Of a stretch of DNA of 64,000 nt, positions 4,101 through 29,071 are shown piece by piece. A program made the translations under genes and the position numbers. The notes below the pieces were generated by a model, which saw nothing but the letters and a program-made list of their open reading frames with translations, ran no database searches and had not been told where the DNA came from. The stretch is taken from positions 186,001 to 250,000 of IMG/VR virus record IMGVR_UViG_3300036760_000522; one strand, 5' to 3'. Each line of letters starts with the position of its first letter. Within the stretch, counting starts at the first letter, position 1.

Positions 4101-7100
4101 AGACATCTTCAGTGAAGCCAGCAGCCACTCCTGTAAAGACGCCGTCGAGCGTCGCAGAAGTGATCTGAAAGCGCCAAGAAAGAGCTAGGATGTGAGGGAA
4201 GGACGTGTCGACTGTTCGAGTCCAGAAAATTGGTTGTCCAAAAGGGAAAGCTCCCGTCGATGCATCGATCACCGTTAGGACGCCAGCAGACGTGCTCGTG
4301 GTGCCTGTTCCACGGCGTACCCAAGGGACAGAATCAAGCTCAGGTAGTGTCGTGGCTTCGTAACTTACGAACGACTCGTTGACAATTCGTGTTTCCGAAG
4401 GGTACGCGATCCGGTGCGTCGGGCTGTTGAGCAATAGAAGCGTCGGATCGTTCAGAACCGGAGTATAGGCTCTCTCATAAGCACGATAGTGCAATTCCCG
4501 AAGCTGAGGCGGGTCAAGAGGTGCCGAGATGTCGAGGGGTGTGTAGTCACTCGGACGAATCAAAACGTTTCGGTACTGGTAAACGTGAGCTGATCGTGGC
4601 GAGACGTTGTTGAGTCGAAACTCCTTCGAGTTCAAACGCCGGATCTCTACGGTTGGGTTGCAACACCAGCTGTAGTTCACAGACACGAAGTCGTCAGGGT
4701 CAGGAGTAGTAGGCAGGACCACCTGACCCAACAACCCAATCACAGCATCCGGCACAACAAGGTTGCCGTTGACGATGACTTCAACATCGGAAGGGTCATC
4801 TGCAATCTCACCGTTGCGCGGATCAAAGAGTTCCCAAAACAAGGTTCCGCTGGATGGTTCCGGAACAGTGAAACTTGCTTGCAAGCGTGCTTGCGTCGAA
4901 GACGGTACGGACAATATTTTGAAAGTACCGGAAACCGTCGAGTACACAGTTCGGCTACCCGAACCTGTAAACAGTTCCAGCTTCACACTGTCCGCCGCGG
5001 ACAGTGAATCGTTGATCTGAACAGCCAACCCGACCACGGACGAACTCGTTGTCGGTGGTAGCCCCAAAGATCCGAGACGTAAGTATAGACCAACATGTTG
5101 TGCTGTGAGTGTCGCACCAGGCAACGTTACCTGTGACACACTGGTGATCGAAGCCCCAGAGCCTCTTTGTAGAACCAGCGGAGGGCGGGCAATGGGACCG
5201 CGATCTGTGAAAACGCTGCGTACAGTCAAAGGAACAGAAGACGAGAAGATTGCGGTATTGAAAGTCGGATCGGTCGGGTTACCTGCCACGTCCGTAGGCG
5301 TACCCAAAATGTTGACCGCCAACTGATACGATCCACTTCCAAGTCCCAGTGTTTCTAGAGAAACGCTTTCTGGACTGGTCGACCACACACGCTTGATTGC
5401 AACGCTCGTAGGACCTGTGATCGAATACTCGACAGGCGTCGTGAGCACACCGTTGGTCCGCATCGGCTGGTCAAACACGACAGTCACAACGCCTTCGTCT
5501 GTGACCGTCGTAGACTGGACCTGAGGACCAAGAATACCTGATGTGTAAAACACGTGATCGAAATCAAACAACGTATCCGCTCGTGTGCGGAGACCTCGAA
5601 TCTCAAGCAAGTAGTTCGCTTGATTGGTCAGCTTGTTCGTCGTCTCAAAAGCTATCTGTTCGACGGCCGAGAGATGACGCCAGCTGAGCGATCCGTTCTG
5701 GGAGTCCACCAAAGGTAACCGACGATCGATCTGAACGTCAATTGTAGTTAGTCCAGCTGTCGAAGCAGAACCTGTTGTGACAGGAAAGTCTGTTCCGTTG
5801 ACGTTCACTTGGTCGGAAATACCGACGGTGTCTCCCGACACAATGATAGGACCGACCGAAACGATCCGATAGACCCCCGGCACACGACCATTAAGAATTT
5901 CAATGTAGGAACCAACATCGTGACCAATGAACCCCCCATCGAGACGCAAAGTGTCCGAAAGAAAGTTGAGGTCCTGTACGTTGACCAGTAACCCTGTACT
6001 GCCCGTTTGAAGCACGTTCGCGATAGGGTTCGCACGCTGAATGTGCGCGGGCACACCGCCAGGTAGTGCGAGAAGTCGGTAGTGCGTGAGATCTTGAACG
6101 CCTGCGAACATCAGCTCAGGCACGGTCAACGTGACCCCAAACCCGTCGCTCGAAACAACGACAGGCACAGGGGTCTCGAGTTCAACCGTTACAAATTCAA
6201 ATATTGTAACGACGTCTTCGAGAACTCGCACGTTATCGGAAACGCGTGTGACGCTGTCTGTGACCGTATCGGAATCAGACAGGATCCGATCGACCTCAGC
6301 ACGCTCGGCTAAGACAGTATCGCCGGCTGTGACGCTGTCTTCGAGGACACGTGCGTTGTCTGAGTCTCGAGCGATCTCGTCTGGAATGTCGAAAATCGTG
6401 TCGTCAACATCAATGTCTACATCGATCGACTCCGCCAAGACGGTGTCCGTCGGACTAGCTACAACATCCGACAAAGAGACATCGACCAGACGATTCAAGA
6501 GAACAGCCAGATCGTCAAAAACAACGAGTAGTTCGATGAACTCTCGTACCCAAGCGACATCGCGAAGAATCGTCTCCGTCAGCGCCAATGAATCTGAAAC
6601 AACGACGCCACGTTCAGCGGTAACAAAGACTTGATCGGTGACCGCCGCAGTATCCGCCAGTGAAATGGCAATGGCCACTGAAGCTGAAACTGAATCCAGT
6701 ACGGTATCTGTGTCGGTAGCGAATCGCTCGTAAGGGACATCGATCGAGAGTGTGTCGCCGATGGAAATTGTGTCGCTAGCAATACCTCCTAGAATCGTCT
6801 CTACAGTGGTTGTGTCAGCAGCAACAATCGCATCCGAAAATTCCCGCTCATACAAGTTCCCAGCACTAAGGAGTTCCGTCAGCGAGACAATGTCTGCGAC
6901 TACCCGCTCATAGAAGACGTCAAGGGCAGTCGAGTCCGCAGTCGAGTCAATATCTTCGGAACTTCGCTGAAACTCGGCAGTTCTCGTAAGTTCGTCAAAA
7001 ACCGAAATCGTGTCGGCAGGGAAGACTGTCTCAACCAACAAAGAGGTGTCCGAAACACTGATCGTGTCGGATGCTTCCCGGGCGGTATTAGCCTCGGTGC

Positions 7101-7641
7101 TGATCTGATCGGTAAAGCTTGGGGCGTCCGAAACATCTCGTACATAGTTAGTCGCAACTTCCAATTGGTCGGTGACGGAAATCGTGTCATCACCAGAAAC
7201 ATTGGGCTCTGAAGTGACCTGATCCGTGAGTGTCGCAGTGTCGCTCGCATCACGGACGTAATCCGTGCTTGCTGCGATCTCGTCAGTAAAGCTGACGTTG
7301 TCGTTTACTCCGTAGAATCCCTCGATGACCAGTTGGTCAGCGACACTGAAGACATCGCTGACGCTACGTACGTAGTTGGTTTCGGCGAGACGCTCATCAA
7401 CCGCGCCTAAAACATCCGGCGAAGGTGTTCTTTGGAAGTCTAGACTCGTAAGTGCCGTGTCAGCGACGGAATCTGAATCCGAAGCTGACCGGTCGTAAGC
7501 GCTGGCACTCGACCCTGTGTCTGTGGTCGAAACAACGGACTCGTCGATGGTCGCCGAGTAGAGCGTACCAGTCGACGTGACTTCGCTCAGCGTGTGCGGG
7601 TCCTCGACCGCAATGGAATCGCCTAGTGTAACGTCGATCAC
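1153..7641 (-). CDS. Giant virion structural protein (2162 aa): N-terminal Asp/Ser/Thr repeat stalk followed by Ig-like and repeated lectin-like beta-sandwich domains (baseplate/fibre associated)
   Basis: Long ORF with beta-rich composition; ~20-aa repeats in the first ~490 aa; four (S/T)YxxxxxPE ... HxYR modules. Confidence 0.8.
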   Translation of the reverse strand: MIDVTLGDSIAVEDPHTLSEVTSTGTLYSATIDESVVSTTDTGSSASAYDRSASDSDSVADTALTSLDFQRTPSPDVLGAVDERLAETNYVRSVSDVFSVADQLVIEGFYGVNDNVSFTDEIAASTDYVRDASDTATLTDQVTSEPNVSGDDTISVTDQLEVATNYVRDVSDAPSFTDQISTEANTAREASDTISVSDTSLLVETVFPADTISVFDELTRTAEFQRSSEDIDSTADSTALDVFYERVVADIVSLTELLSAGNLYEREFSDAIVAADTTTVETILGGIASDTISIGDTLSIDVPYERFATDTDTVLDSVSASVAIAISLADTAAVTDQVFVTAERGVVVSDSLALTETILRDVAWVREFIELLVVFDDLAVLLNRLVDVSLSDVVASPTDTVLAESIDVDIDVDDTIFDIPDEIARDSDNARVLEDSVTAGDTVLAERAEVDRILSDSDTVTDSVTRVSDNVRVLEDVVTIFEFVTVELETPVPVVVSSDGFGVTLTVPELMFAGVQDLTHYRLLALPGGVPAHIQRANPIANVLQTGSTGLLVNVQDLNFLSDTLRLDGGFIGHDVGSYIEILNGRVPGVYRIVSVGPIIVSGDTVGISDQVNVNGTDFPVTTGSASTAGLTTIDVQIDRRLPLVDSQNGSLSWRHLSAVEQIAFETTNKLTNQANYLLEIRGLRTRADTLFDFDHVFYTSGILGPQVQSTTVTDEGVVTVVFDQPMRTNGVLTTPVEYSITGPTSVAIKRVWSTSPESVSLETLGLGSGSYQLAVNILGTPTDVAGNPTDPTFNTAIFSSSVPLTVRSVFTDRGPIARPPLVLQRGSGASITSVSQVTLPGATLTAQHVGLYLRLGSLGLPPTTSSSVVGLAVQINDSLSAADSVKLELFTGSGSRTVYSTVSGTFKILSVPSSTQARLQASFTVPEPSSGTLFWELFDPRNGEIADDPSDVEVIVNGNLVVPDAVIGLLGQVVLPTTPDPDDFVSVNYSWCCNPTVEIRRLNSKEFRLNNVSPRSAHVYQYRNVLIRPSDYTPLDISAPLDPPQLRELHYRAYERAYTPVLNDPTLLLLNSPTHRIAYPSETRIVNESFVSYEATTLPELDSVPWVRRGTGTTSTSAGVLTVIDASTGAFPFGQPIFWTRTVDTSFPHILALSWRFQITSATLDGVFTGVAAGFTEDVSAFVIGFLDVAGVKKIGLLKRGSADNPALVSAWTGGVDTLGNPTNLPANFDWGVLHSYRFYRDLSGTVRLYVDGEVVETLRILAVEAPFLEELASPFDEVQDVFFGSVSRPAASVSAWDFVRYLVLPTNALQTAPSSFVSYEANVEPEVDAKPWIPIGFHGTETILATNTLLLDSTSATDTSTATQVGLIGGDFRGFVRLEPLLTSASQFVVDVEVQGRTQTHGVDPYGLMFAVDDSQRLTQVCFLADAAVPKLSYGGRSLPEDFSPYVWTRTGGSAVAMVGRILRLTDASVADGVLYFIEDLEPVLSDQRVIASGVDYIFEFRVEAISYTVDGSGFAGVFAQAYDGARAVGVQFEILAGVRYVTFCSDGVPFVPGRFAFDWFDGDPHTYRLSKSTTGDLVSLFIDGTFVGSLAYSSFTVPVPTDAMVSFGSATPVSVGSISVADWHYCNAWRVRSDLQRFVGIWKGYDPNALTGYHTSTKITGRNVAINGNALGDPLADFFGSGVVAGDLLIVDAGANKGVYEISGVGSSTTLTIPSTWPLAPSLVDYRILRETDWSISHKYRLSKDSTGEVDLFLDSDPNPLIRISYSSTDLPGSSSGIVLTLSAALPAIVFGSFSPENLCQSSWNYVRYGITRSPTELRIAPHHQVINQWNVMESPERLYTVLPHELTSFKSSSTGIVPRKDPDFLADPGLPAWTQLNEGTPLVPSTQTFETRAPYVVTEFVSVLNNPEDVLNNDGDFVLNDGSTRIRLEVPDDILYSCLDVIEQSTGALALIAPADDSCGPELGGFQYVREVCLTYDGTVLPENDTTAPTPWELVSDVPVDVSASVAGGALSYGTVGGATVYRNPTPLLDAPGLITEAVFRLRVAADSTLGVGDTQIRFGISAPGFTVAIALLTSGIAERFAIVSDQQDGKYLGAISLDYLDGRYHTYRIERDPGAGVVRVSVDPGPQSFDIGVSDAISMTADLYCFKIGGPLGSPLC
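6170..7641 (-). repeat. Protein-level tandem repeat, ~18-21 aa unit (x-D-x5-D-x7-Y-x-R), over 20 copies
   Basis: e.g. SDVFSVADQ, SDTATLTDQ, DDTISVTDQ, SDAPSFTDQ, SDTISVSDT; degenerate at DNA level. Confidence 0.85.
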
Positions 7642-7748
7642 ACACTACCGCCCAAATCCGAACACCTACTAACGAACCGGATCAAAAGTGTTTTCCAGCG
7701 GCATCAGAAGGGACCTCACGTCTCAAAAAACAGCTGTTTCATCTGTTT

Positions 7749-8096
7749 TTGAACTGGGTTAAGCAGGAGAAGCGAAGGGACACGCGGAAATTGAAACAAA
7801 ACCACCAACGGCTCGCACACGAGCTCATGCAGTCACTGGGAAGCTGCCTCAAGCAGCCATTTCAACTTGTCGCTTACACTTCACACACGTCCCGAAATCC
7901 AGGCGCCGTCACATCGCTGTACTTCGTTGTGAGTTGTAAGCAAACCGACGTACGCGTTGATGTGACCTCCGACGGATTCGAAATCCAGCCCAACCAGGGG
8001 AACGCCAAGACACACACTACGGAGAGGGAACGCCACGATCAGAAGTCGTTGGTCGTACGCTTGCAAAGCTTACTCGACGGTTTCGGCCCGAACTGA
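7749..8096 (+). CDS. Hypothetical protein
   Basis: 115-aa ORF filling the gap at the start of the plus-strand island; start uncertain. Confidence 0.5.
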   Translation: MNWVKQEKRRDTRKLKQNHQRLAHELMQSLGSCLKQPFQLVAYTSHTSRNPGAVTSLYFVVSCKQTDVRVDVTSDGFEIQPNQGNAKTHTTERERHDQKSLVVRLQSLLDGFGPN

Positions 8097-8124
8097 GCGA
8101 AAGTGTTTTTGCTCTGTCTAGGTA

Positions 8125-8436
8125 GTGACCGTCCGTCGAATTGTCTCTCGCTACAAAGAAGGGATCATCCCGGCTTCTTACTTCAAGTCGGGCACAATAG
8201 TTCTCTACGGCAAGTACAAAAATCACCGCGGGAGAGTTGCGGGCTTTGGTCAAGACAAGTGGGGAAATCCGACGATTGAAATCGAACCCATTCCCAAAGG
8301 GCGCAAGCAAAACAAGGTCATCGGGCTCTACAGGATCTGGCGGGCGGATGTAAAAGAAAAAGCTCTGGCCGCTGTTCGCAAGACCGTAGCTCAACGCATT
8401 GTTGAACGACACCGCCAAGCAAATGGGACGTCCTAG
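8125..8436 (+). CDS. Small basic protein with KOW/SH3-like core; candidate internal virion protein
   Basis: GTIVLYGKYKNHRGRV core; N-terminal RRIVSRYKEG and C-terminal QRIVERHRQA leader-like motifs. Confidence 0.7.
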   Translation: MTVRRIVSRYKEGIIPASYFKSGTIVLYGKYKNHRGRVAGFGQDKWGNPTIEIEPIPKGRKQNKVIGLYRIWRADVKEKALAAVRKTVAQRIVERHRQANGTS

Positions 8437-8456
8437 TCATTGGTGTTTCAGTATCC

Positions 8457-9515
8457 GTGAAAGCACCGTTCCCGTACTTCGGCGGCAAAAGCCGGGTCGC
8501 TCAGGCTGTCTGGAAGGCGTTCGGAGAAAACGTACCGAACTACATAGAACCGTTCTGCGGGTCCTGTGCAGTGCTTCTTGCTCGCCCCGGTGGGCCCGGA
8601 AAGATTGAAACTGTCAACGACGGTTGTTCCTACATTTGCAATTTCTGGAGATCAATCAAACACAACCCACAAAAAACTGCCGAGTGGTGCGACTGGCCTG
8701 TGTCCGAACTCGATTTGCATGCACGTCACGCATGGCTCATCAAGCAGTCGATCGATCTCCGCGAGAAGCTCCGAGCTGATCCCGACTACCACGACGCCAA
8801 AATCGCAGGATGGTGGGTCTGGGGGATCTGCCAATGGATCGGAGGGGGTTGGTGCAAAACCCCCTACCAACAAAGGCCGCACCTACATGATGGCGACCGA
8901 GGTGTGAACGCGGCAGAAAAACAGCTGAAGCAACAAATCCCTGGGATCCACGCTTCCGGTGTGCACAGCTTTGGAACACGTCTCCCAGCTATCGGCAACG
9001 ATCGGGCGCTCAATGGCCTGACTGCATCACCGGCACTCGAATGGTTTCAAATGCTCTCACAACGCCTCAGGAGAGTTCGATTGGTCCACGGCGACTGGAC
9101 CAGGGTACTCGGGTCTTCGACGCTTGGGAAGGGCAGGAACGTCGGAGGAAGACGGCCTACAGCTGTTTTTCTCGACGCCCCTTACGACGACGAGTTACGG
9201 GACCCTGGACTCTACACTGAGGATACAAAAAACCTCTCAGTGAAAGTCCGCATTTGGGCCCTTGAGCACGGTGATGATCCAGACCTCAGGATCGCACTTT
9301 GTGGGCTTGCGTCGGAGCACGACGGCCACATGCCGGCGACTTGGCGTGTCCATCGTTGGACGGGGGCTTCCGGCTACTCACGTGGAAAAAACCGAAGTCG
9401 TACACGCCACGAAGAAACAATTTGGTTCAGTCCGCACTGCCTCCATGCCGAAATGGACGAAACACTTTCGGCGCTCCACAACTTCGATTCAATTTCAGAA
9501 GCCTCTGATTCGTAG
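8457..9515 (+). CDS. DNA adenine methyltransferase (D12/Dam-like)
   Basis: PFPYFGGKSR, YIEPFCGSCAV (motif I), VND and FLDAPY (DPPY variant). Confidence 0.85.
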   Translation: MKAPFPYFGGKSRVAQAVWKAFGENVPNYIEPFCGSCAVLLARPGGPGKIETVNDGCSYICNFWRSIKHNPQKTAEWCDWPVSELDLHARHAWLIKQSIDLREKLRADPDYHDAKIAGWWVWGICQWIGGGWCKTPYQQRPHLHDGDRGVNAAEKQLKQQIPGIHASGVHSFGTRLPAIGNDRALNGLTASPALEWFQMLSQRLRRVRLVHGDWTRVLGSSTLGKGRNVGGRRPTAVFLDAPYDDELRDPGLYTEDTKNLSVKVRIWALEHGDDPDLRIALCGLASEHDGHMPATWRVHRWTGASGYSRGKNRSRTRHEETIWFSPHCLHAEMDETLSALHNFDSISEASDS

Positions 9516-9523
9516 GTACTAAC

Positions 9524-9841
9524 ATGGCTTCCAAAATCACGATCGGCTGTAGCCCTTGGGGAGAAAACTGTGCACAGCTCGGACAACCCGGCTACGTTGA
9601 GCTCGCCCAGAGAGAGCTCAAGGCTTTCAAGGCTCAGCTAGAGCGTCACTTTGCCGCCAAACACAACGGCGCAAAGCCGACATGTCATCTTGTCATTGTC
9701 GGCAACGAACACGATTACGGGACATACTACGACGTCCAAGCCAGTTACCGAAACGGGACGGAAGAGGTCGACGCATTCTGGCTCGAGAGCAACACACCAG
9801 AAAACTGGGATGCTACAGCCACAGCCGAGCTCAACGCATGA
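9524..9841 (+). CDS. Hypothetical phage protein (HDYGTYYDV motif)
   Basis: Clean ORF 8 nt after the methylase; ATGA overlap with the next gene. Confidence 0.75.
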   Translation: MASKITIGCSPWGENCAQLGQPGYVELAQRELKAFKAQLERHFAAKHNGAKPTCHLVIVGNEHDYGTYYDVQASYRNGTEEVDAFWLESNTPENWDATATAELNA

Positions 9842-10083
9842 CTTTCACAGAATGGAAGCAAGCCTGCCTCACGACACTAGAAGATATCGGGCTACTCATC
9901 GATGACTTGTGGGATTCAGACGATCCTTACGAAGTCTTCCACATGAGCAGAGAGGCTTACAAAGCGCAACAAAGCCCGCGAAGTTTTGTCGAGGACATCT
10001 TCTCAGAGGAGATTGCGCGAGCTGAGGGCGAAGCTCAAGAACGGCGCGACGCGAACGCACACTACGTGGACAGCGAAGAATGA
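9838..10083 (+). CDS. Small acidic protein (81 aa)
   Basis: Start reassigned to ATG 9838 (ATGA overlap); 21 of 81 residues are Asp/Glu. Confidence 0.7.
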   Translation: MTFTEWKQACLTTLEDIGLLIDDLWDSDDPYEVFHMSREAYKAQQSPRSFVEDIFSEEIARAEGEAQERRDANAHYVDSEE

Positions 10084-19762: not shown

Positions 19763-21031
19763 TCAAACCTTCCAAGCGAGAGCGGCTTCCTTCTTCTTGA
19801 ACTGATTTGCTTCCCACTTCTTCTTGTCCTCTTCGGACATGTTTTCAGTGGGGTCTCCCGCCTCTTTCTTCTTGAACTGATTCGCCTCCCACTTCTTCTT
19901 GTCCTCTTCGGACATGTTCTCAGTGGGGTCCCCTGCTTCCTTTGTGAAGTTGTCCTTGTTCTTCTCGTGTTCAATCTTCCACTTCTTGGCGTCGGCTTCG
20001 GACATGTTCTCGGTCGGATCAGCCGGCTTGCCTTCTTCGAAGCGAGAGCGTTTGGCGTCGTCGTCTGAACTCGCCAAAACCGAGGGATCCAAGGAAAGTT
20101 CATTCTTGAGAAAACCGCCTAACCCAAGACGTGTTCTCATGATCTCACGTTTGAAGGCTTCCGACTTCTGTGTATCGATTGATCCGAGATGCACTAAAAC
20201 CGTTGCAATGCCGTCGACCACTTCGAGCAAATTGGTCAAAGACAACCGATAACGTTTCGCGTTAGCCTGGCGCATAGCCACCACAAGGCTCTTCCGCATG
20301 GTCTCAAACGCGATCGCTATTTGCGCGTCATCTACCGCAGCCAATTTGTTGACAACAGCATCCGGGACTGTGTGGCTCAAAACTGTAGCGAGTTCACGAG
20401 GGCTAGGACGTGAAGACCGATCTTCCAAAGAGCTTGCCAAATGCTCTAGCTGATCAGCAACCTGTCCGATGTCAGGCATCGTCGAGGCAACCACCGTAGG
20501 AGTTGTTATCACTCCTTCCGGATCCAAGCTCTCAACCAACGAGGCCACACGATCCAATGCCAATGCACCGCTCTCACGAGCTAGTTTTGCGATCTCACGG
20601 AGTTCGTCCGCGGCTTGTTTTGGCTTCATAGACACTCTATTTTCTTGCATCTGACGGTCCTCCGAACGACGCTGCACATAACGAATCCTCACGTCTTTGA
20701 GAACCCGTTCCAACTCTTCCACTTTCTCAGGCAAAAGCCCTTGCTTGATTTCCTCGTAGTCAAGACGATCTGCCGCGAGAGCTGTCGCCTCTAGAGCCTT
20801 TTGAAGCTTGAAGGCTGTCTCAGGGATGCTATTGACGAGATGGCCAGCGGTTTCGAAAATGTGATCCTTGTGTGAAGACTTGTTGATCAACACAGTTGTG
20901 TCCGCGATGTAGCGAACCAGTTGATCACAACGAAGACGCGCATCACCTAACTCCTCCATCAAATAGAGAAGAGCCCCCGCCTCCTTGGTCTGGTGCGCAG
21001 TCCGTTGCAAGCAACTGGTAAATTCATTCAC
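19763..21031 (-). CDS. Helical protein with C-terminal DPTENMSEED repeats; candidate head/internal protein
   Basis: 422-aa ORF with several KEA/RTA/KQA/KLA motifs. Confidence 0.8.
   Translation of the reverse strand: MNEFTSCLQRTAHQTKEAGALLYLMEELGDARLRCDQLVRYIADTTVLINKSSHKDHIFETAGHLVNSIPETAFKLQKALEATALAADRLDYEEIKQGLLPEKVEELERVLKDVRIRYVQRRSEDRQMQENRVSMKPKQAADELREIAKLARESGALALDRVASLVESLDPEGVITTPTVVASTMPDIGQVADQLEHLASSLEDRSSRPSPRELATVLSHTVPDAVVNKLAAVDDAQIAIAFETMRKSLVVAMRQANAKRYRLSLTNLLEVVDGIATVLVHLGSIDTQKSEAFKREIMRTRLGLGGFLKNELSLDPSVLASSDDDAKRSRFEEGKPADPTENMSEADAKKWKIEHEKNKDNFTKEAGDPTENMSEEDKKKWEANQFKKKEAGDPTENMSEEDKKKWEANQFKKKEAALAWKV
19785..20022 (-). repeat. 75-bp (25-aa) tandem repeat: two near-identical copies plus one diverged
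   Basis: KEAGDPTENMSEEDKKKWEANQFKK x2 and ADPTENMSEADAKKW. Confidence 0.9.
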
Positions 21032-22407: not shown

Positions 22408-23034
22408 TCAGTGCCCGTGTCCGAATGCCGTTTGGTACTTGGGCTTTCCGTCCCACTTGCTGGCAGAGTGTCCATCGATGGTGAATGACTGCCCCGACGG
22501 ACGGACTCGTTTGGTCGGACCCGTGAACTTGCCAGGAACGGCTACTACATAGTCAGTAGCCTCGTGCCCGCCTGTGGTTTTCTCTGCGATCTTTCGAACA
22601 AGGAGTACCTTGCCTCGAACCTCGACCACTTCATAGAAGTCGATGTTTGTCTGATCGTAGCCCCAACTCGTGTAGTAGATATCGCCAACGTCGGCATCGT
22701 GTTTGAACTCACGCCGCTCCTGTTGACGGTCCTCTTTCATCTTGAGCCGGGTTCTCTGGCCCGCAATTGTTTCTTCAATCTTCCGAGTCCGATCGGCCTC
22801 GCTGAGGAAACGGTAATTCCAGAGTGGCTTGTTGGCTTTGCCGGAGAAAGCGATCCCGTACGGCTTACTATTCGACTCCCAAGTCCAAATCGCGAGATCT
22901 GTACCCTCAGGGGTGATGGGATCCTTATCTCGTACCTCGGGCGGAAGATGAAACGACCGAGGTACGTGAAATCGACCCGGGAGGCCTGCCTCACGAAATC
23001 GGGCGACTACGTTCGAGATGATGACGGAATCCAC
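22408..23034 (-). CDS. SWGYDQTN-motif protein with an N-terminal VVARFREA leader
   Basis: VGDIYYTSWGYDQTNIDFYEVV; probable leaderless GTG start at 23034, 14 nt after the late-promoter motif. Confidence 0.75.
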   Translation of the reverse strand: MDSVIISNVVARFREAGLPGRFHVPRSFHLPPEVRDKDPITPEGTDLAIWTWESNSKPYGIAFSGKANKPLWNYRFLSEADRTRKIEETIAGQRTRLKMKEDRQQERREFKHDADVGDIYYTSWGYDQTNIDFYEVVEVRGKVLLVRKIAEKTTGGHEATDYVVAVPGKFTGPTKRVRPSGQSFTIDGHSASKWDGKPKYQTAFGHGH

Positions 23035-23057
23035 ATACACACAAACTGACAAAAGCA

Positions 23058-23687
23058 TTAGAGTGAGGAGGCGATCACTGTGTGCAAGGACTCATCGACA
23101 AAACGCCGCTTCGCTTGCGCATAGCGGCCCCAAAGAACGAAGACGACGGGTCGGCCAAGAGCATTGATGGCTTGAAGGGTCGCGTCTGTAAACGTTTCCC
23201 AGCCGTGGTCTCGGTGCGAACCAGGCTCACTGTCACGAACTGTCAGCACCGAATTGAGAAGCAAGATCCCTTGGCGAGCCCACCCCCACAAGGAGCCGTT
23301 CTGTCTAGTAACTCCAACATCCTGCTCAAGCTCGACGTAGATGTTCTGTAGGCTCGGTGGTGAGGCGTAACCGTGGGGCACGGAGAAGCAGAGGCCGTGA
23401 GCCTGTCCGAGCTTGTGATAGGGGTCCTGCCCCAAGATCACCACGCGGACGTCTTCGAGATGTGCCGCCTTGTAGGCGTTGAATATTTTGTGAGTAGGTG
23501 GATAGACAGGTAGCTGCTTCCGTTCGCTGCGTACGAAAGCAACCAACTCACGGAAGTACGCCTTTCTCGCCTCAGTACGAAAGAGTTCCTCCCATGCACC
23601 CCACAAGTTGTTCGTGTCCGCCACTCCTGTGAGCGAACACTGCACAAACGAAAGAGCCAAGAACCCGTAGGCTCCTGGCTCTTTCAA
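23058..23687 (-). pseudogene. ung: Family-1 uracil-DNA glycosylase, C-terminally truncated
   Basis: VILGQDPYH, HGLCFSV, PPSLQNI, LLLNSVLTV and VFVLWG present; stops at IASSL* before the HPSPLS motif. Confidence 0.8.
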
Positions 23688-23788
23688 TCTTCAAGGAGGT
23701 GTACGTACTGACTAACAATGCAGCGGGTTCAAAAGTAGTTTCCGTCTCAGGTCCGTTTGATGGGATCGCTACCAGTGGAGGACTGTCA

Positions 23789-24157
23789 ATGATTTACGAG
23801 TACAACGCCAAGCTTCTACGCGTCGTCGACGGGGACACTATTTGGCTTGATGTCAACCTTGGCTTCGGGATCCATGCGACGCTAGACTTTCGACTTTACG
23901 GAATCAACACTCCGGAAGTGATCGGAACAACCAAGACCGCTGGGCTCGCCGCCAAGGCCGAGCTTGAACGGCTTCTTTCCGTAGCTGCACAACTTGGAAA
24001 TCCTCTGAAAATTGAGAGTACGAAATCTGACAAGTACGGTCGATATTTAGCTGTCATCCACGTCAAACAAGCCGACGGTACGGAGATCGACGTCAACGAG
24101 GAACTGATCAAGCAAGGCCATGCGACGCGGTACTTTGGAGTTGGGCCCAAGGTTTGA
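23789..24157 (+). CDS. Thermonuclease (SNase family)
   Basis: RVVDGDT, RLYGINTPE, DKYGRYLA, VNEELIKQGHA; start reassigned to ATG 23789 (GGAGG SD). Confidence 0.9.
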   Translation: MIYEYNAKLLRVVDGDTIWLDVNLGFGIHATLDFRLYGINTPEVIGTTKTAGLAAKAELERLLSVAAQLGNPLKIESTKSDKYGRYLAVIHVKQADGTEIDVNEELIKQGHATRYFGVGPKV

Positions 24158-24171
24158 TCGGAAGTGTGGCC

Positions 24172-26070
24172 TCACACAAAAACAAAAACCTGCTCAGTAG
24201 CTGGCACCTTTCCTATTCTACCAAGAGGTAGAACCAAGGTGCGCTGCAAACGAAACCCTGCGAGACCTGCCAGTCGCACCAACTCGTCCGCAATCGGGAA
24301 CCGTTGTGCCCCTCGTCGCACATTCTTTGTGTTCACACAAAACAAACCACCGTCACGTAAGTGTCGTTTGGACTTCAACACGAACGGTTGAAGAAACCCT
24401 TCCAGCCAAAGATCCCACGTTGAATACCTGACCCAACTCTGCGCCGCACTATCAGAGTACTTCTCGACCGAAAAGTACGGAGGACTCGTTAGTACAAGAT
24501 CCGCGCGCAAGTCTGCCAGGTCCACGTCTTCGAACGGGTATTCAAAAAAGTCAAAATGGCCAACCACCGATTGCAAAGCTGTGTATGACGCACCAGCTTT
24601 AGGATGAGGATCAACGCCAACGTATCGTCTACCGCTTGCCAGAGTCCCTACAGCACGACCACCATAACCAGCACACGGATCCAAGACGGTACCGCCAACA
24701 GGGCACAACGCCTCCACCAGAGCCTTTGCAAAACAAGGGCGAAAATTGGTCGGGCCACGAACAACGGCCTGCAAAGCGCGAAACACACGTACAGGCTGCA
24801 CAGGATCACCAACAGCCAATTGAAACTTCACGGCCCTACGCACATATTCCTGGTCGTACCACGCCGATCGCACTGAAGGACGATCTTGATATCTAGCGTC
24901 ATATCTGTGTGGAAAGAACCGCTGACACAGCTTCGATCCTGAACGTGTTTCACGCACCAATCTATCTTCCACTAGTTCAGTTTTGGACAACAACAGCTTA
25001 GACCAATCTATCTCCGCCTCCTCCATCGACGGCACAACCAAAGGCAGCACAGTTCTCGAAAGAACAGCGACGACGCTCTCTACATACGTTAGTGTGCGAG
25101 CGTCCAGCCTCTTGATCGCAAGACTCGCAGTTTCAACGTCCAACTCGACTTTGCTGCTACGTGAAGGACGACCTGTACATCCAGGGGCTAAACCGTGTTG
25201 TTTCCTCCAACGCGAAACACTTGTGCGGGACACTTGAAGTACATCAGCGATGTCGTCGGTATGGAGGCCCCGATCAAATAACGATCGCAAACGATCGTAG
25301 GTCAACAGATCTCGAGGCGCTAAACCAGCCTTGGGCGTCTTGACAGCGATCTTGTAACCGAGGCTAGGATGTAGATGTGGACGCACCAAATCCAAAAACC
25401 TGTTCAGCGCTGTGCGCCCTTGAATGTGGAGGGATCCGTCCTCGTAGACTTTGCTTCTGATACCCAGACTTGTCAGAATTCCAACCTGCACGCGTTGATC
25501 CTCTAGTGAGGGACCAACAGTGATCCTTACGTAATTACCTGAACGCGATCCATCATCCATGAACCAGACAGCCAGAGCTAAGCCGTCTACCCACTCTACT
25601 GGCAAGCGTGTAAACGTTTTGGGCCCTGAACCTGACGGGTAGAACAACTGCCAATAAGGAAAGAGGGCTCGACACGCATGTGTGAACAATCGATGACCCA
25701 GATACTCCCCTTTATCTGCTTTCCGAATGGCTACTGTAAACACCCCCCACTCCTCAGCTTTCCACAACAAATACTCATGTTGTTTGACGGAGTGGTGTTC
25801 TTGGTATCGTGCTGTATTTGTACCAGAACGCCGTAAGTTACCGTCACCTAACATTGATCCAACTAGAATTGACCTCAGACGATCGGTCAAAGTATCTGGG
25901 AGCCCAAAGCGATCACTCTTAGTCAGTGTCGGAATGCCGTACTTCTGGCGAAGACGACTAACGTGTGCTTGGGAAATACCAAACACACGACCAATTTCGG
26001 TCTCTGTCTTGTGCTGATCAAGATAAAGGTCCCGCAGAAATTGTTCCGTCAATCGTGTCGACACCTTCAC
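24172..26070 (-). CDS. HTH + double-motif LAGLIDADG endonuclease + HTH + amino-DNA methyltransferase fusion
   Basis: LVGSMLGDG and LAVWFMDDG (LAGLIDADG_2); IADVLQVSRTSVSRW (HTH); VLDPCAGYGGR and LTSPPY (MTase). Confidence 0.85.
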   Translation of the reverse strand: MKVSTRLTEQFLRDLYLDQHKTETEIGRVFGISQAHVSRLRQKYGIPTLTKSDRFGLPDTLTDRLRSILVGSMLGDGNLRRSGTNTARYQEHHSVKQHEYLLWKAEEWGVFTVAIRKADKGEYLGHRLFTHACRALFPYWQLFYPSGSGPKTFTRLPVEWVDGLALAVWFMDDGSRSGNYVRITVGPSLEDQRVQVGILTSLGIRSKVYEDGSLHIQGRTALNRFLDLVRPHLHPSLGYKIAVKTPKAGLAPRDLLTYDRLRSLFDRGLHTDDIADVLQVSRTSVSRWRKQHGLAPGCTGRPSRSSKVELDVETASLAIKRLDARTLTYVESVVAVLSRTVLPLVVPSMEEAEIDWSKLLLSKTELVEDRLVRETRSGSKLCQRFFPHRYDARYQDRPSVRSAWYDQEYVRRAVKFQLAVGDPVQPVRVFRALQAVVRGPTNFRPCFAKALVEALCPVGGTVLDPCAGYGGRAVGTLASGRRYVGVDPHPKAGASYTALQSVVGHFDFFEYPFEDVDLADLRADLVLTSPPYFSVEKYSDSAAQSWVRYSTWDLWLEGFLQPFVLKSKRHLRDGGLFCVNTKNVRRGAQRFPIADELVRLAGLAGFRLQRTLVLPLGRIGKVPATEQVFVFV

Positions 26071-26210
26071 ACGATTAGCATACTTCTGTGCAACGATTCA
26101 GTGCTGTAGTGATTTTTCTCAGCAAACAAACCTGTCGGTAACCAGACACAGTACGAACCAAACACGGTTGCAATCGGAAAAAACGACGACGACCCAACAA
26201 TGATTGAAAT

Positions 26211-26247
26211 AGAAAAAGGCCGCCAGGGGTCTCCCAGCGGCCTTTCT
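26211..26247 (-). terminator. Intrinsic terminator after the major capsid gene
   Basis: AAAGGCCGC-TGGGAGACCCCTG-GCGGCCTTTTTCT on the minus strand. Confidence 0.85.
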
Positions 26248-26289
26248 AGATCAACGATTACAGATTGCTCAACTACTCTGAATCACTGA

Positions 26290-27174
26290 TCAAACTCTGG
26301 TCACGACCAGGCGGCTGACAGCACGTGGGTTGAACGCGCCGATGCCGATATTTTCAAAGACCGAAAATCCGATCAGACGGTTCTTGGGATCGTCGGCGCT
26401 CAAAACCGTGAGTTCTGTACGAACCGGGAACCGGCCAAAGTTCTCGGCTTCCGCGCAGATGTAGATGAACCCAACCGGTACGATTCTGCTCGTGATGATC
26501 TGCGCTCCCCACAACACAGCTTGTAGGCCTGTGTTGAGAAGGACGGCCTGGCTTTCGATATCCAGGATGTCCCGACCGAACTTGCGGATGTCCGCATAGT
26601 CGGTCGCGTTCATGAAGATCCGGGCGACCCGAAGCCCGTGACGCTCGACCTCTGCGAATGCGTCGGCCAAGAACGACGGTGAGACCGGTGCGACCACAGC
26701 CAAGTCAGGGTTGGTCTGACCGGGTAGTGTGTCGAAGCCGCTGACAGCAACGCTGTCAACGATTGCGAAACCGCGCTCGTCTTCAGCTGCTGCAATCTGC
26801 GCTTTCGCCAGGTCCTGAGCACGCTCGATCATGTCGAACCTGCGCTCCTTGATCTGGGAGAGCGGGATCTCAGGATTCGAAGCAATCTCGAAGACCGGGA
26901 AGATCACACGACGTGACTTCTGGATCGACTGGATGTTGGCGCCTTCTTCACCGACGACGAACGCCGTGACTTCAGGATCCTTGTCGTAAACAGGCAAGGC
27001 GCCGTCAGGCAGCTCTTCCACGAGGAAGCTCTTCCGGATGACTGCCACGTAGTCGCGTCGTAGACGCAACGATTGAATCATCGAAGCCGCAAGCTTCTCA
27101 CGCCCTTGCGGTGTTCTGATGTGTTCGCCGATTAGGCGCTGTCGGATCTCGTTACTGATTATGGAAGCTGACAT
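26290..27174 (-). CDS. Major capsid protein (HK97 fold)
   Basis: GREKLAASM...RRDY...ELPDGALPVYD, IFMNATDYADIRKFG, LWGAQII, IGAFNPRAV; follows protease, scaffold and decoration genes; strong terminator. Confidence 0.88.
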   Translation of the reverse strand: MSASIISNEIRQRLIGEHIRTPQGREKLAASMIQSLRLRRDYVAVIRKSFLVEELPDGALPVYDKDPEVTAFVVGEEGANIQSIQKSRRVIFPVFEIASNPEIPLSQIKERRFDMIERAQDLAKAQIAAAEDERGFAIVDSVAVSGFDTLPGQTNPDLAVVAPVSPSFLADAFAEVERHGLRVARIFMNATDYADIRKFGRDILDIESQAVLLNTGLQAVLWGAQIITSRIVPVGFIYICAEAENFGRFPVRTELTVLSADDPKNRLIGFSVFENIGIGAFNPRAVSRLVVTRV

Positions 27175-27194
27175 GTTTCACCTCAAATCCGAGA

Positions 27195-27818
27195 TCAGAC
27201 CCGGAGATCCAGAACCAGTAGTGTGTTGTTAGCGTCTGGGGCGATTCGTACGATCCCCATGAGGGTGACGAAGTCCCGGTTGTTCTGACCGGCTACGTTC
27301 CACTCGTAGGCATCTTCAATACGATTCGTCAAAAGACCATTGACGCTCGCGTAGAGTTTGTCGCCCTGCGCATACGTGAGAGCCGCAGAGCCACCAACTT
27401 GTTGTTGTGTTTCCCACAGGCTCACAGCGTCTGTGCCGAAACCACAGAGGAATGGGCCTCGACCCGAAGCGACGCCAGGCGTGTTCTCGAATGGGTTTCC
27501 GAGAGCGTCGTTGATGAAGAGACCGAGGGGCTTCTGGCCAGCAACGTAGGCCGCAGCAATCTGCACGGGGCCGCCGATGTAGCCGTTACCACCATCGGGG
27601 CGTGTGAACGCCACCGTGGCTCCCAAAACACCAACTCTGGTGATCCCACTCAAAGTGGTTGACTTGTTGGCTACTGCGGTGACGACTGGGGGATTCGCTT
27701 GCGTGAACGCATCTACCGTCAGGATCCCAATTGAGTTGCGGATCCCAGAGTGTAGAATTTGTACACGACCAGAGGTTTCCCTGAAGTCACCCGAGCCTTG
27801 ACCGATACTCAAAGGCAT
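27195..27818 (-). CDS. Capsid decoration/cement protein
   Basis: Position immediately before the MCP; PLGLFIND, YAQGDKLYASVNGLLT, MGIVRIAP. Confidence 0.7.
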   Translation of the reverse strand: MPLSIGQGSGDFRETSGRVQILHSGIRNSIGILTVDAFTQANPPVVTAVANKSTTLSGITRVGVLGATVAFTRPDGGNGYIGGPVQIAAAYVAGQKPLGLFINDALGNPFENTPGVASGRGPFLCGFGTDAVSLWETQQQVGGSAALTYAQGDKLYASVNGLLTNRIEDAYEWNVAGQNNRDFVTLMGIVRIAPDANNTLLVLDLRV

Positions 27819-27901
27819 AGATTTCTCCTAGCTGGGGTGGATTCGTCCCAGAAGGTGCTGGGCCACGATTCATTCCATCTGAGGCGCTAGTCTGATTTGG
27901 A

Positions 27902-29071
27902 CTAACGAAAAGCGTGACTCACGTCGGGTGGGGCGTCCCACAGACCTGCGAGGTTGTCAGATCCCGTCGCCGGGAGGTCTGATCCTGGAGTGCCGCCTAT
28001 ACGGCTCACACCCGGAGGTTTTGTTCCAAGTGTGCGACTTGCGGTCTTGACCCTGGTACCCGGATCATCAGCACTGGCAGTGATGCCAAAAGCTGCTTGA
28101 GCATTCTGGGCTTCAGGTGCTGAAGCGAAGATCTGTTGCAGATCAGGGTCCACTGCCACGTCATCGACCATCATCGACGGGCCCATGTCCTGAAAGAAGC
28201 CCATGTCATCATTGGCCATCTGCGGCTGTTGTTGAACGGGTTGCTGCTGCTGCTGAGCTTGCTGCTGCGGAGGCTGTTGTTGCAGCTGCTGCACAGCTTG
28301 TTGCACCATATCTTGGAGCTGAGCTTCTAGCTGCTGCTGTGACTGTACCTGCTGTTGCTGGACTTGTTGCTGAGCCAATTGCTGCACCATCTGGTTAGCA
28401 GTGACTGTGTCCCCCTGCTGCATGGCTGCGATCGCTTTTGCAGCAAGCTTCGCACGAGCTTCCTTCTGCTGTTCCTTATCATCATCTTGCTGCTGATCCT
28501 GAGCTTGCTTGCTCTTGTCTTTGTCAGCGTCGTCTTGCTGCTGCTGATCCTGAGCTTGCTTGCTCTTGTCTTTGTCAGCGTCGTCTTGCTGCTGCTGCTG
28601 CTGATCCTGAGCTTGCTTGCTCTTGTCTTTGTCAGCGTCGTCTTGCTGCTCGTCATCAGAGGCGAGACGTCGAACGGTATCGATCAAAACGCTATCGGGT
28701 AGGTGCATGAACCCGAGGGCCTGATCCTCCAAGAGTTGTGTCGAAGCGTTCTTGAGGAGATGCTTGGAAAGCTGGAGGCAGACCTCAGCTTTCTTCTCGA
28801 GCTTCTCGTCGTCTTCTTGCTCTTCGGCGGCGGTCTTGAAAGTGTCAGGCCTGAACGCAGGCATCCCGATCTCGTTTACACGAGTGTAGCCAGTAGAGTC
28901 GTACTCGTCCTTCCACCGACTCGGTGATACATCTTCTGCAAAGTCTGAAGGCGTACCGGTCACGTATGCGTCGGCAGCGGGTTGGGCCTGCAAATTCTCA
29001 GGCCGCATCGAATCAGGATCAGCCGCCAACTTGGCAATTCTCTCGCGGTCCCATGTAGATCGTTCACGCAT
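27902..29071 (-). CDS. Scaffolding/core protein with polyQ and acidic repeats
   Basis: Position between protease and capsid genes; low complexity; many (K/R)xA motifs. Confidence 0.75.
   Translation of the reverse strand: MRERSTWDRERIAKLAADPDSMRPENLQAQPAADAYVTGTPSDFAEDVSPSRWKDEYDSTGYTRVNEIGMPAFRPDTFKTAAEEQEDDEKLEKKAEVCLQLSKHLLKNASTQLLEDQALGFMHLPDSVLIDTVRRLASDDEQQDDADKDKSKQAQDQQQQQQDDADKDKSKQAQDQQQQDDADKDKSKQAQDQQQDDDKEQQKEARAKLAAKAIAAMQQGDTVTANQMVQQLAQQQVQQQQVQSQQQLEAQLQDMVQQAVQQLQQQPPQQQAQQQQQPVQQQPQMANDDMGFFQDMGPSMMVDDVAVDPDLQQIFASAPEAQNAQAAFGITASADDPGTRVKTASRTLGTKPPGVSRIGGTPGSDLPATGSDNLAGLWDAPPDVSHAFR
28485..28650 (-). repeat. Three tandem copies of DDADKDKSKQAQD(Q)n with n = 6, 4, 3
   Basis: Near-identical DNA units differing in CAG number. 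Confidence 0.92.

Follow-up and report, generated by a model that had tools for sequence, protein, structure and literature searches.

Single-chain LAGLIDADG homing endonucleases of the I-SceI/I-WcaI family (Pfam PF03161) carry two LAGLIDADG motifs in one chain, each with a catalytic Asp, and are mobile at one fixed site. The known enzymes are about 235 aa long and are encoded in group I introns of organelle rRNA genes, and I-SceI-type enzymes recognize sites of about 18 bp. The free-standing Seg and Mob homing endonuclease genes of T4-like phages are instead intergenic cassettes beside a conserved gene, present in some close relatives and absent from others, with divergence of the flank next to the insert and an expected role in excluding the markers of a co-infecting relative. 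These are GIY-YIG or HNH nucleases with no methylase, and their carriers are immune through target-site sequence differences. Single-chain restriction-modification enzymes (Type IIG/IIC/IIL, e.g., MmeI, BpuSI and Eco57I) do join a nuclease to an amino-methyltransferase, but they use an N-terminal PD-(D/E)XK nuclease, a gamma-class N6-adenine methylase and a C-terminal target-recognition domain, recognize short sites and act as cellular defense. Homing endonucleases and restriction enzymes share three nuclease folds. LAGLIDADG is the classic exception, with no known link to DNA modification, and to our knowledge no restriction-modification enzyme with a LAGLIDADG nuclease is known. Our own literature searches, which covered an incomplete library and so are not proof of novelty, found no description of a natural LAGLIDADG-methylase fusion.

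We examined such a fusion in a 64,000-nt stretch (the window; positions 186,001 to 250,000 of IMG/VR record IMGVR_UViG_3300036760_000522) from a 301-kb phage-G-like jumbo phage. An earlier note, made from the sequence alone, had described a LAGLIDADG homing endonuclease fused to a DNA methyltransferase right after the capsid terminator, in a single ORF with two HTH modules and without intein or intron features. That observation is confirmed. One uninterrupted ORF runs from 24172 to 26070 on the minus strand and encodes 632 aa from a GTG start. A public gene call of 626 aa implies that the TTG at 26052, which has an AAGGTG upstream, is the likelier start. All of the motifs listed in the note are present: MLGDG at aa 73-77, FMDDG at aa 170-174, DPCAGYGG at aa 464-471 and TSPPY at aa 528-532. 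We found no Hint/intein domain by Pfam search and no intron or other Rfam family above threshold, and so an intein or intron origin was rejected. The ORF is separate from its neighbors and stands alone between a terminator and a convergent gene.

The upstream neighbor (26290-27174, minus strand) is the major capsid (head) protein gene. It matches phrog_2522, major head protein, at E 9e-51, and is 37% identical to Bacillus phage G gp27 and 72% identical to LR745208. Its Rho-independent terminator lies at 26206-26247 (minus strand), 44 nt after the capsid stop, and consists of a 13-15-bp G+C-rich hairpin (26213-26247) followed by a U-tract; folding of the 101-nt stretch gave -38.6 kcal/mol, with z -5 against shuffles. 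A leader of about 135 nt (26071-26205, minus strand) separates this terminator from the fusion ORF. On the other side, a staphylococcal-nuclease-like gene (23699-24157, plus strand; phrog_452, E 1e-28) is convergent with the fusion ORF, marks the right-hand border of the insert and is not part of it.

AlphaFold predicted the structure of the fusion protein with a mean pLDDT of 88.7. The N-terminal HTH module (aa 9-55; 25906-26046, minus strand) matches HTH_28 and Sigma70_r4 at aa 15-44 and has modeled helices at aa 9-18, 23-30 and 34-43. It is followed by a single-chain LAGLIDADG domain of the I-SceI type (aa 59-245; 25336-25896, minus strand), which matches LAGLIDADG_2 (PF03161) at aa 66-185 with E 5e-18 and 66.1 bits against a cut-off of 25. 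A profile search of PDB gave I-WcaI at 1.6e-16 and I-SceI at 1e-14. The model has the pseudo-dimeric alpha-beta-beta-alpha-beta-beta-alpha fold with a DNA-binding saddle, and Foldseek matched it to I-SceI, I-WcaI and I-DmoI with TM by target of 0.58-0.73, the highest being I-SceI (1r7m). Motif 1 (aa 68-77, ILVGSMLGDG; 25840-25869, minus strand) carries the catalytic Asp76 and aligns with the GDA of I-SceI, and motif 2 (aa 165-174, ALAVWFMDDG; 25549-25578, minus strand) carries the catalytic Asp173 and aligns with FMDDGG of I-SceI. The second HTH module (aa 252-300; 25171-25317, minus strand) matches HTH_23 at aa 264-291 with E 6e-9 and is followed by a flexible linker (aa 298-307, pLDDT below 50). 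Relative to I-SceI and I-WcaI, this nuclease is free-standing in a phage, carries two extra HTH modules and has a 300-aa methyltransferase fused to its C-terminus.

The methyltransferase module (aa 331-632; 24175-25080, minus strand) comprises a helical N-terminal subdomain plus a class-I fold. It matches phrog_12517 at aa 436-586 and N6_N4_Mtase (PF01555) at aa 524-585, with 32.6 bits against a cut-off of 26.7. Motifs X and I, the SAM-binding region, lie at aa 439-473 (GPTNFRP...VLDPCAGYGGRA; 24652-24756, minus strand), and motif IV, the catalytic loop of amino-methyltransferases, lies at aa 526-533 (VLTSPPYF; 24472-24495, minus strand). TSPPY is the N4-cytosine type, and L-T-S-P-P-Y at aa 527-532 fits the PROSITE N4_MTASE signature [LIVMF]-T-S-P-P-[FY]. 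A 330-aa stand-alone homolog is annotated as an N4-cytosine methylase through IPR017985. The modified base was not determined, and by fold alone the domain also resembles m2G RNA methyltransferases such as Trm11 and TrmN. In beta-class N4-cytosine/N6-adenine methyltransferases the order is IV-VIII, then the target-recognition domain, then X-I. Here both regions align with that class at sequence level, but X-I precedes IV-VIII: 2zie (TTHA0409) aligns query 492-609 to chain 5-128, whereas the N4C methylase 8s9n aligns query 440-500 to chain 193-253. The module is thus a circularly permuted relative and not a beta-class member. It has no target-recognition domain between the halves, where a helical N-terminal subdomain and fused DNA-binding modules stand instead, and none is recognizable after motif VIII.

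The earlier note had held that its reading would fail if the fusion were a one-off, a frameshift artifact or inactive in either domain, and had called for a domain-architecture search. That search returned about 80 protein clusters of full-length homologs, at 34-60% identity, with the same Pfam architecture and in the same frame, and 288 viral contigs carry the fusion. The contig from the source run is identical to the window over the whole 22800-28000 stretch. A frameshift or assembly artifact was therefore rejected. Only 2-3 contigs in 185,579 species genomes carry the fusion, so it is essentially confined to phages. As for activity, no cleavage site, methylation site or activity is known, but both catalytic centers are kept under purifying selection. 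D76 and D173 are invariant in 46/46 non-redundant fusions spanning 19-89% domain identity, and D172 and G174 are also invariant. DPC[AS]G[YWF]GGR and TSPPY[FW] are nearly invariant across the fusions, with D464, C466 and G468-R472 invariant. dN/dS is 0.04-0.11 in both halves, and the halves co-diverge (Mantel r 0.92), with mean identity of 0.38 for the methylase half and 0.35 for the nuclease half. WhiA, a bacterial transcription factor in which a LAGLIDADG fold is followed by an HTH domain, appeared among the structural matches. WhiA has lost the catalytic acidic residues and is vertically inherited, whereas here the residues are invariant and the gene is sporadic.

In every fusion locus with upstream sequence, the fusion gene lies directly 3' of the capsid gene of phage-G-like jumbo phages. 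In an unbiased capsid-seeded sample of 62 informative loci, this slot was empty in 27, held stand-alone LAGLIDADG genes in 19, the fusion in 13 and another methylase fusion in 3. Tandem arrays also occur, and in one locus (L134) the methylase module sits at this slot next to an HNH homing-endonuclease gene. At least 30 changes of slot state are needed on the capsid tree. Capsids that are 93-97% identical carry fusions that are only 26-61% identical, and the Mantel correlation of fusion with capsid is 0.35. Two loci (L088 and L089) carry an in-frame internal-deletion relic of a fusion gene, and another (L055) carries a LAGLIDADG copy with both catalytic residues replaced, which fits degeneration and loss in the homing cycle.

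Clean empty alleles were found twice. Locus L137, which is empty, differs from L020 by a 2.47-kb indel lying exactly between the terminator and the next gene. The window itself is collinear over 13 kb, at about 90% identity, with a near-isogenic empty allele in two loci (L326 and L327), except that 24161-26288 is replaced by 87 other nt; the joint was also seen in the run X4 contig. A metagenome scan with the neighboring staphylococcal-nuclease-like protein gave a best match only 57% identical, and the empty allele was reached instead through the capsid's 90% cluster. Positionally equivalent hairpins occur in L326, L137 and L020, and homology with the empty alleles ends after the terminator. 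Because both alleles keep the terminator, the insert proper is about 24161-26205, with its left end just after the U-tract. The staphylococcal-nuclease-like gene is also present in L326.

Within the capsid gene, the window and L326 differ at 33 positions, 32 of them synonymous, with none in nt 1-350 and 22 in nt 729-864, next to the insert. This steep gradient is suggestive of co-conversion of flanking markers but is not proof of it, since the pair is mosaic elsewhere too (9 of 29 left-flank 100-nt bins are at or below 90% identity). The clade-wide tests are weak. A sliding-window ANOSIM of capsid sequence against slot content showed no clear rise towards the 3' end, and the contrast between 5' and 3' capsid identity in pairs with the same or different slot content was small (0.037 against 0.020, p 0.013) and drew on pairs that are not independent. 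A search for the nuclease's target as a stretch of unusually conserved synonymous sites in the capsid gene also yielded no candidate that stands out; third positions are saturated everywhere, at about 1.3 bits. The densest cluster of differences between the filled and empty alleles is 8 synonymous changes in 20 nt of the capsid gene (26376-26395, minus strand; codons DDPKNRLIG). By itself it is not significant (roughly p 0.1), and it is only a lead for the target or immunity site.

We interpret the feature as a site-specific selfish cassette of about 2.05 kb, made of the leader plus one ORF. In this view, during mixed infection with a relative lacking the cassette, the nuclease would make a double-strand break in or near the 3' part of that relative's capsid gene, and repair from the carrier genome would copy the cassette, with a stretch of the capsid 3' end, into the naive genome. 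The tethered methyltransferase, brought to the same DNA by the HTH-LAGLIDADG-HTH part, would methylate a base in or beside the recognition site on the carrier's own genome copies, which would therefore not be cut. Immunity would then come from methylation rather than from mutation of the target site, a restriction-modification logic applied to homing. What our analysis establishes is the architecture, the intact active-site residues, purifying selection on and co-divergence of both halves, strict site specificity, the sporadic distribution with many gains and losses, the near-isogenic empty allele, the deletion relic and the divergence gradient in the capsid gene. That the protein cleaves, where it cleaves, what it methylates and that methylation protects are inferences; neither cleavage of a long (about 18-22 bp) site nor formation of m4C was measured, and the complex with DNA was not modeled.

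We are confident that this is a mobile homing-endonuclease-methylase fusion with both halves functional, but regard self-protection by the methylase as tentative. The earlier note's interpretation, either a selfish nuclease that protects its own allele by methylation or a methylase with a long recognition site, is thus partly supported: the fusion is old and widespread, and the gene behaves as a free-standing homing-endonuclease gene beside a conserved gene, but neither protection of the carrier's allele nor methylation of a long site was shown. Tethered, site-directed methylation is plausible because the same methylase module is also fused to HTH plus Ros/MucR or C2H2 zinc-finger arrays in other phage proteins. 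In addition, cytosine methylation inside a LAGLIDADG target can block cleavage, as reported for I-CreI-derived meganucleases, although this was not tested here. However, stand-alone LAGLIDADG genes thrive in the same slot without a methylase, and three fusion-clade-like nucleases lack the methylase yet keep both catalytic Asp, so methylation is not obligatory for immunity.

If the methylase does protect the carrier, this is a new solution to a problem that every free-standing homing gene faces, namely how not to cut its own genome, and a new form of phage-against-phage interference in jumbo phages. The boldest version, which we consider somewhat less likely than not, is that this would be the first natural restriction-modification-like use of the LAGLIDADG fold, with a tethered N4-cytosine methylase marking the nuclease's own long recognition site. 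That would let the element target capsid-gene sequence that cannot easily mutate and serve as a weapon between co-infecting jumbo phages, with several rival lineages (two deep fusion clades, a stand-alone clade, and an HNH gene paired with a methylase gene) contesting the same slot. The family also offers dozens of natural, diverged pairs of a long-site DNA reader with a tethered methylase, which are of interest for programmable methylation and as new meganuclease scaffolds. The natural filled, empty, tandem and relic alleles, including a near-isogenic filled/empty pair, make the question directly testable with cloned DNA, without a cultured host.

The alternative that survives best, although we think it unlikely, is that the nuclease drives site-specific spread as above while the methylase is useful cargo with its own short specificity, protecting the phage, for example, against a host restriction enzyme. 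The fusion would then merely tie a beneficial gene to the selfish one and slow loss of the cassette. Stand-alone homologs of the methylase module, of about 294-350 aa, do exist, so the module may have a short specificity of its own; nucleases of the same clades work without a methylase; and purifying selection on both halves is predicted by this reading as well. However, the habitual fusion of the module to long arrays of sequence-specific DNA-binding domains points to tethered rather than free methylation, 44% of close relatives carry nothing in the slot, and the phage already has two further conventional PF01555 methylases. The methylase half also diverges as fast as the nuclease half, which is unexpected if its specificity had to match a host enzyme.

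Less likely still is a site-directed methylase that is not a homing element, in which the HTH-LAGLIDADG-HTH part serves only as a long-site recognition module in place of a target-recognition domain. Such a protein would lay a rare epigenetic mark, for example one regulating late transcription or packaging near the capsid gene, and presence and absence would reflect ordinary phage mosaicism. The lack of a recognizable target-recognition domain, the nuclease-free DNA-binding arrays of sister proteins and the earlier domestication of LAGLIDADG folds as DNA binders, as in WhiA, are compatible with this. Domesticated LAGLIDADG proteins such as WhiA and many maturases typically lose the catalytic Asp, though, and both are invariant here. 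Stand-alone, evidently nucleolytic relatives and an HNH homing gene occupy the same slot, and the many state changes together with the decay relic fit the homing cycle better than a housekeeping regulator. Finally, a single-chain restriction-modification-like weapon that attacks unmethylated DNA of competing phages or the host at many sites and spreads by ordinary recombination recalls Type IIG/IIC enzymes in joining nuclease and methylase, and rapid diversification relative to the capsid fits a conflict system, but this is very unlikely because sites of about 18 bp are too rare for general restriction and the single genomic site is the hallmark of homing rather than of a defense island. With its LAGLIDADG nuclease, no C-terminal target-recognition domain and confinement to phages, the protein is not a member of the Type IIG/IIC enzymes even if it may work like one.

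No clear promoter was found in the leader of the cassette. A sigma-70 scan found no match in the leader, and an 8-mer search of the window's intergenic regions found no shared promoter motif. The leaders of relatives, on the other hand, carry a TTGACx-N17-TATxCT-like site.

Window 24172-26070 holds a single uninterrupted minus-strand ORF of 632 aa. A public gene call for the same protein (P0001) is 626 aa long, which corresponds to the TTG at 26052. Because this codon is preceded by AAGGTG, it is probably the real start. Pfam identified HTH_28 at aa 15-44, LAGLIDADG_2 at aa 66-185 (E 5e-18), HTH_23 at aa 264-291, and N6_N4_Mtase at aa 524-585, the last above its curated cut-off. PHROGs added a "homing endonuclease with LAGLIDADG motif" family over aa 60-242 and an unnamed family, phrog_12517, over aa 436-586. 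An earlier note, made from the sequence alone, had described this ORF as a LAGLIDADG homing endonuclease fused to a DNA methyltransferase directly after the capsid terminator, and every motif it read in the protein is present where it was placed. That observation is real. The upstream gene, at 26290-27174, is the major head protein gene; its product matches phrog_2522 (E 9e-51) and is 37% identical to Bacillus phage G gp27. A strong terminator hairpin with a U-tract lies at 26206-26247, 44 nt after the capsid stop. The note had seen no intein splice motifs or flanking intron, and our searches likewise found no intein domain and no intron family.

The window is part of a 301.5-kb virus record with direct terminal repeats. 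That record has no other LAGLIDADG gene, but it encodes two further conventional PF01555 DNA methylases, at positions 260821-261813 (-) and 166523-167257 (+) of the genome, outside the window or at its edge.

We used AlphaFold, with 20 homologues, to investigate the structure of the fusion protein. The model has a mean pLDDT of 88.7, and its only disordered linker is at aa 298-307, between the second HTH and the methylase half. The nuclease part superposes on I-SceI (TM 0.73 by target), I-WcaI and I-DmoI. A sequence profile of the family yielded hits to I-WcaI (1.6e-16) and I-SceI (1e-14) with both LAGLIDADG motifs in register, which places D76 and D173 on the catalytic acidic residues of I-SceI. 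By sequence, active-site residues and fold, the protein is a member of the I-SceI-type LAGLIDADG family.

The methylase part is a class-I fold. At sequence level, its aa 492-609 align with the N-terminal part, and its aa 440-500 with the C-terminal part, of beta-class DNA methylases (2zie and the N4-cytosine methylase 8s9n). It is therefore not a beta-class methylase but a circularly permuted relative of that class, with motifs X-I first, followed by IV-VIII, and it has no target-recognition domain after motif VIII. Motif IV is L-T-S-P-P-Y, the N4-cytosine signature in PROSITE. By fold alone, however, the domain also resembles m2G RNA methyltransferases, so the substrate base is inferred rather than shown. 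A 330-aa stand-alone homologue in a Vibrio phage is annotated as an N4-cytosine methylase on the basis of the same signature.

The fusion is an old and maintained family. About 80 protein clusters share the full architecture at 34-60% identity, and 288 viral contigs encode a relative. Among one genome for each of 185,579 prokaryote species, only two or three MAG contigs carry the full fusion, and all other matches are LAGLIDADG-only. Across 46 non-redundant fusions, D76 and D173 never vary, and motif I (DPC[AS]G[YWF]GGR) and motif IV (TSPPY[FW]) are nearly invariant. In the closest pairs, dN/dS is 0.065 and 0.107 for the nuclease half and 0.044 and 0.081 for the methylase half. The two halves diverge in step (Mantel r 0.92) and at similar rates, with mean identities of 0.35 and 0.38. 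The note had named in advance what would overturn its reading, namely that the fusion was a one-off or a frameshift artefact, or that either domain was inactive; on every count that sequence can test, none of these applies.

In every fusion locus with upstream sequence, the capsid gene lies directly 5' on the same strand. To obtain a sample that was unbiased with respect to the content of this slot, we then seeded a search with the capsid protein instead of the fusion. Among 62 informative loci, the slot just after the capsid gene held nothing in 27, one to three stand-alone HTH-LAGLIDADG-HTH genes in 19, the fusion in 13, and the methylase module with another N-terminus in 3. Tandem arrangements also occur, including a stand-alone gene followed by a fusion, a fusion followed by a stand-alone gene, and three stand-alone genes in a row. 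In one locus (L134), an HNH homing-endonuclease gene (6262-7263; phrog_559, with a treble-clef zinc finger) is followed by a separate gene (7529-8827) for a 432-aa protein carrying the same methylase module, so that nuclease and methylase are two adjacent genes rather than one fusion. In the capsid slot, or just behind a fusion, loci L036 (4441-7029) and L057 (4570-6711) encode proteins of 862 and 713 aa with the methylase module at the C-terminus and a long N-terminal part that matches only unnamed phage families (phrog_13389, phrog_28936).

On a capsid DNA tree of 95 sequences, the slot content needs at least 30 changes. The fusion alone needs at least 24, of which 9 are forced by well-supported branches. 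Phages whose capsids are 93-97% identical carry fusions that are only 26-61% identical. The nuclease-domain tree shows one well-supported stand-alone clade and at least two deep fusion clades, so several rival lineages contest one site. The gene behaves like the free-standing Seg and Mob genes of T4-like phages, but with another nuclease fold.

Two comparisons resolved empty alleles at the nucleotide level. Loci L137 and L020 are 90% identical through the capsid gene. L020 has 2.47 kb, made up of the fusion gene and short flanks, exactly between the T-tract of the terminator and about 30 nt before the next gene, where L137 has 45 nt. The second case is closer. When public contigs were aligned to the window, a contig from another sediment sample covered the capsid side and the SNase side but skipped 24161-26288, with 87 other letters in between. 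We recovered that contig (L327), along with a 159-kb contig having the same arrangement (L326), through the 90%-identity cluster of the capsid. The window and L326 are collinear over about 13 kb at 89-91% identity, and this indel is the only large difference. Both alleles keep a terminator hairpin at the same distance from the capsid stop. The insert proper therefore runs from just after the U-tract (about 26205) to about 11 nt past the stop of the ORF, an end that is 4 nt from the stop of the convergent SNase gene.

The SNase gene is a staphylococcal-nuclease-like gene (phrog_452) at window 23699-24157 (+), and its stop codon is 14 nt from that of the fusion ORF. It is also present in the near-isogenic empty allele L326, but it is absent from other relatives such as L083 and L005, where a UDG-family gene follows directly. 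It is therefore a second variable gene in the same region.

Between the window and L326, the capsid gene has 33 differences, 32 of them synonymous. None fall in nt 1-350, 2 fall in nt 351-512, 9 in nt 513-660, and 22 in nt 729-864. Identity per 100 nt, counted from the junction, runs 0.49, 0.83, 0.95, 0.93, 0.98, 0.99, 0.99, 1.0, 1.0, 1.0. This is what is expected if the cassette arrived together with the adjoining capsid 3' end from a more distant donor, that is, by co-conversion after a cut in that region. However, the two genomes are mosaic elsewhere too, with 9 of 29 left-flank bins at or below 90% identity, and clade-wide tests of the same idea were weak or null, so the gradient does not settle whether co-conversion took place. 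The densest cluster of differences, 8 synonymous changes within 20 nt at window 26376-26395, is only a lead for the target or immunity site.

Decayed copies were found as well. Loci L088 (5993-6286) and L089 (4208-4501) carry, right after the capsid gene, a 97-aa ORF whose residues 22-46 match fusion residues 5-29 and whose residues 45-93 match fusion residues 583-631. This is a natural in-frame internal-deletion relic. In locus L055, a LAGLIDADG copy with N and R at the two catalytic positions stands in front of an intact fusion within a single stop-free frame of 1230 aa (6204-9896). Either a decayed gene has been read through into a live one, or this is a true double-domain protein. Together with the empty, single and tandem states, the relic and the decayed copy cover the stages of the homing cycle.

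Two observations favor tethered, site-directed methylation as the role of the methylase. First, the module has no target-recognition domain of its own after motif VIII. Second, in other genes of these phages, the same module is fused to arrays of sequence-specific DNA binders. This sister family (L051 4324-6921, L066 4209-6410, L073 4660-6933, and L163 1746-4022 (-)) comprises proteins of 733-865 aa with HTH modules plus Ros/MucR, C2H2 or zinc-ribbon fingers. No nuclease domain is recognizable in them, and their genes are not linked to the capsid gene. One copy (L073) lies in the same 380-kb genome as a capsid-linked fusion (L009). LAGLIDADG enzymes are known to be sensitive to cytosine methylation inside their target. 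Taken together, this makes self-protection of the carrier genome the reading we rank first, although only tentatively. Three observations count against such protection being obligatory: stand-alone nucleases prosper in the same slot, three fusion-clade-like nucleases lack the methylase yet keep both Asp residues, and stand-alone methylase homologues of 294-350 aa exist.

The main rival, which we consider possible but less likely, is that the methylase is useful cargo with its own short specificity. A pure site-directed methylase with a silent nuclease is improbable, as it is hard to reconcile with invariant catalytic residues and homing-like population behavior. A general restriction-like weapon is the least likely, being hard to reconcile with the single fixed site.

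The note had proposed either a selfish nuclease that protects its own allele by methylation or a methylase with a long recognition site, and our results bear out only part of that interpretation. The finding is more than the note could see: it is a widespread, site-specific, mobile homing-endonuclease-methylase cassette with natural filled, empty, tandem and relic alleles. The enzymatic activities and the protective role of the methylase are inferred, not shown. The protein is not a Type IIG enzyme, since the nuclease fold, domain order and context all differ, although it may work like one. We found no paper describing a natural LAGLIDADG-methylase fusion in full-text searches, which covered an incomplete body of literature.

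The methylase module also occurs away from the capsid slot in a 290-kb phage genome (G002) whose slot is empty. It carries three paralogous proteins of ~405 aa (L160 905-2125, L161 754-1974, and L162 750-1961) with the methylase module and an unrecognized ~200-aa N-terminus, and one of these lies next to a thymidylate-synthase-like gene. Upstream of the fusion start in loci L002-L004, L016 and L022, the leaders share, at ~40-110 nt, a TTGACx-N17-TAT(A/T)CT-like promoter bracketed by an inverted repeat, TGTAAACA...TGTTTA. The repeat is a possible operator for the protein's own HTH modules, but the window's own leader has no clear copy.

The largest ORF in the window, of 2162 aa at 1153-7641 (-), was not examined. 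Two neighboring structural-region proteins, at window 19763-21031 (-) and 27902-29071 (-), have internal repeats. One is a thrice-repeated GDPTENMSE(E/A)D(K/A)KKW... unit at its C-terminus. The other has DDADKDKSKQAQDQQQ repeats followed by a long Gln-rich tract, lies between the protease-like gene and the capsid gene, and looks scaffold-like.
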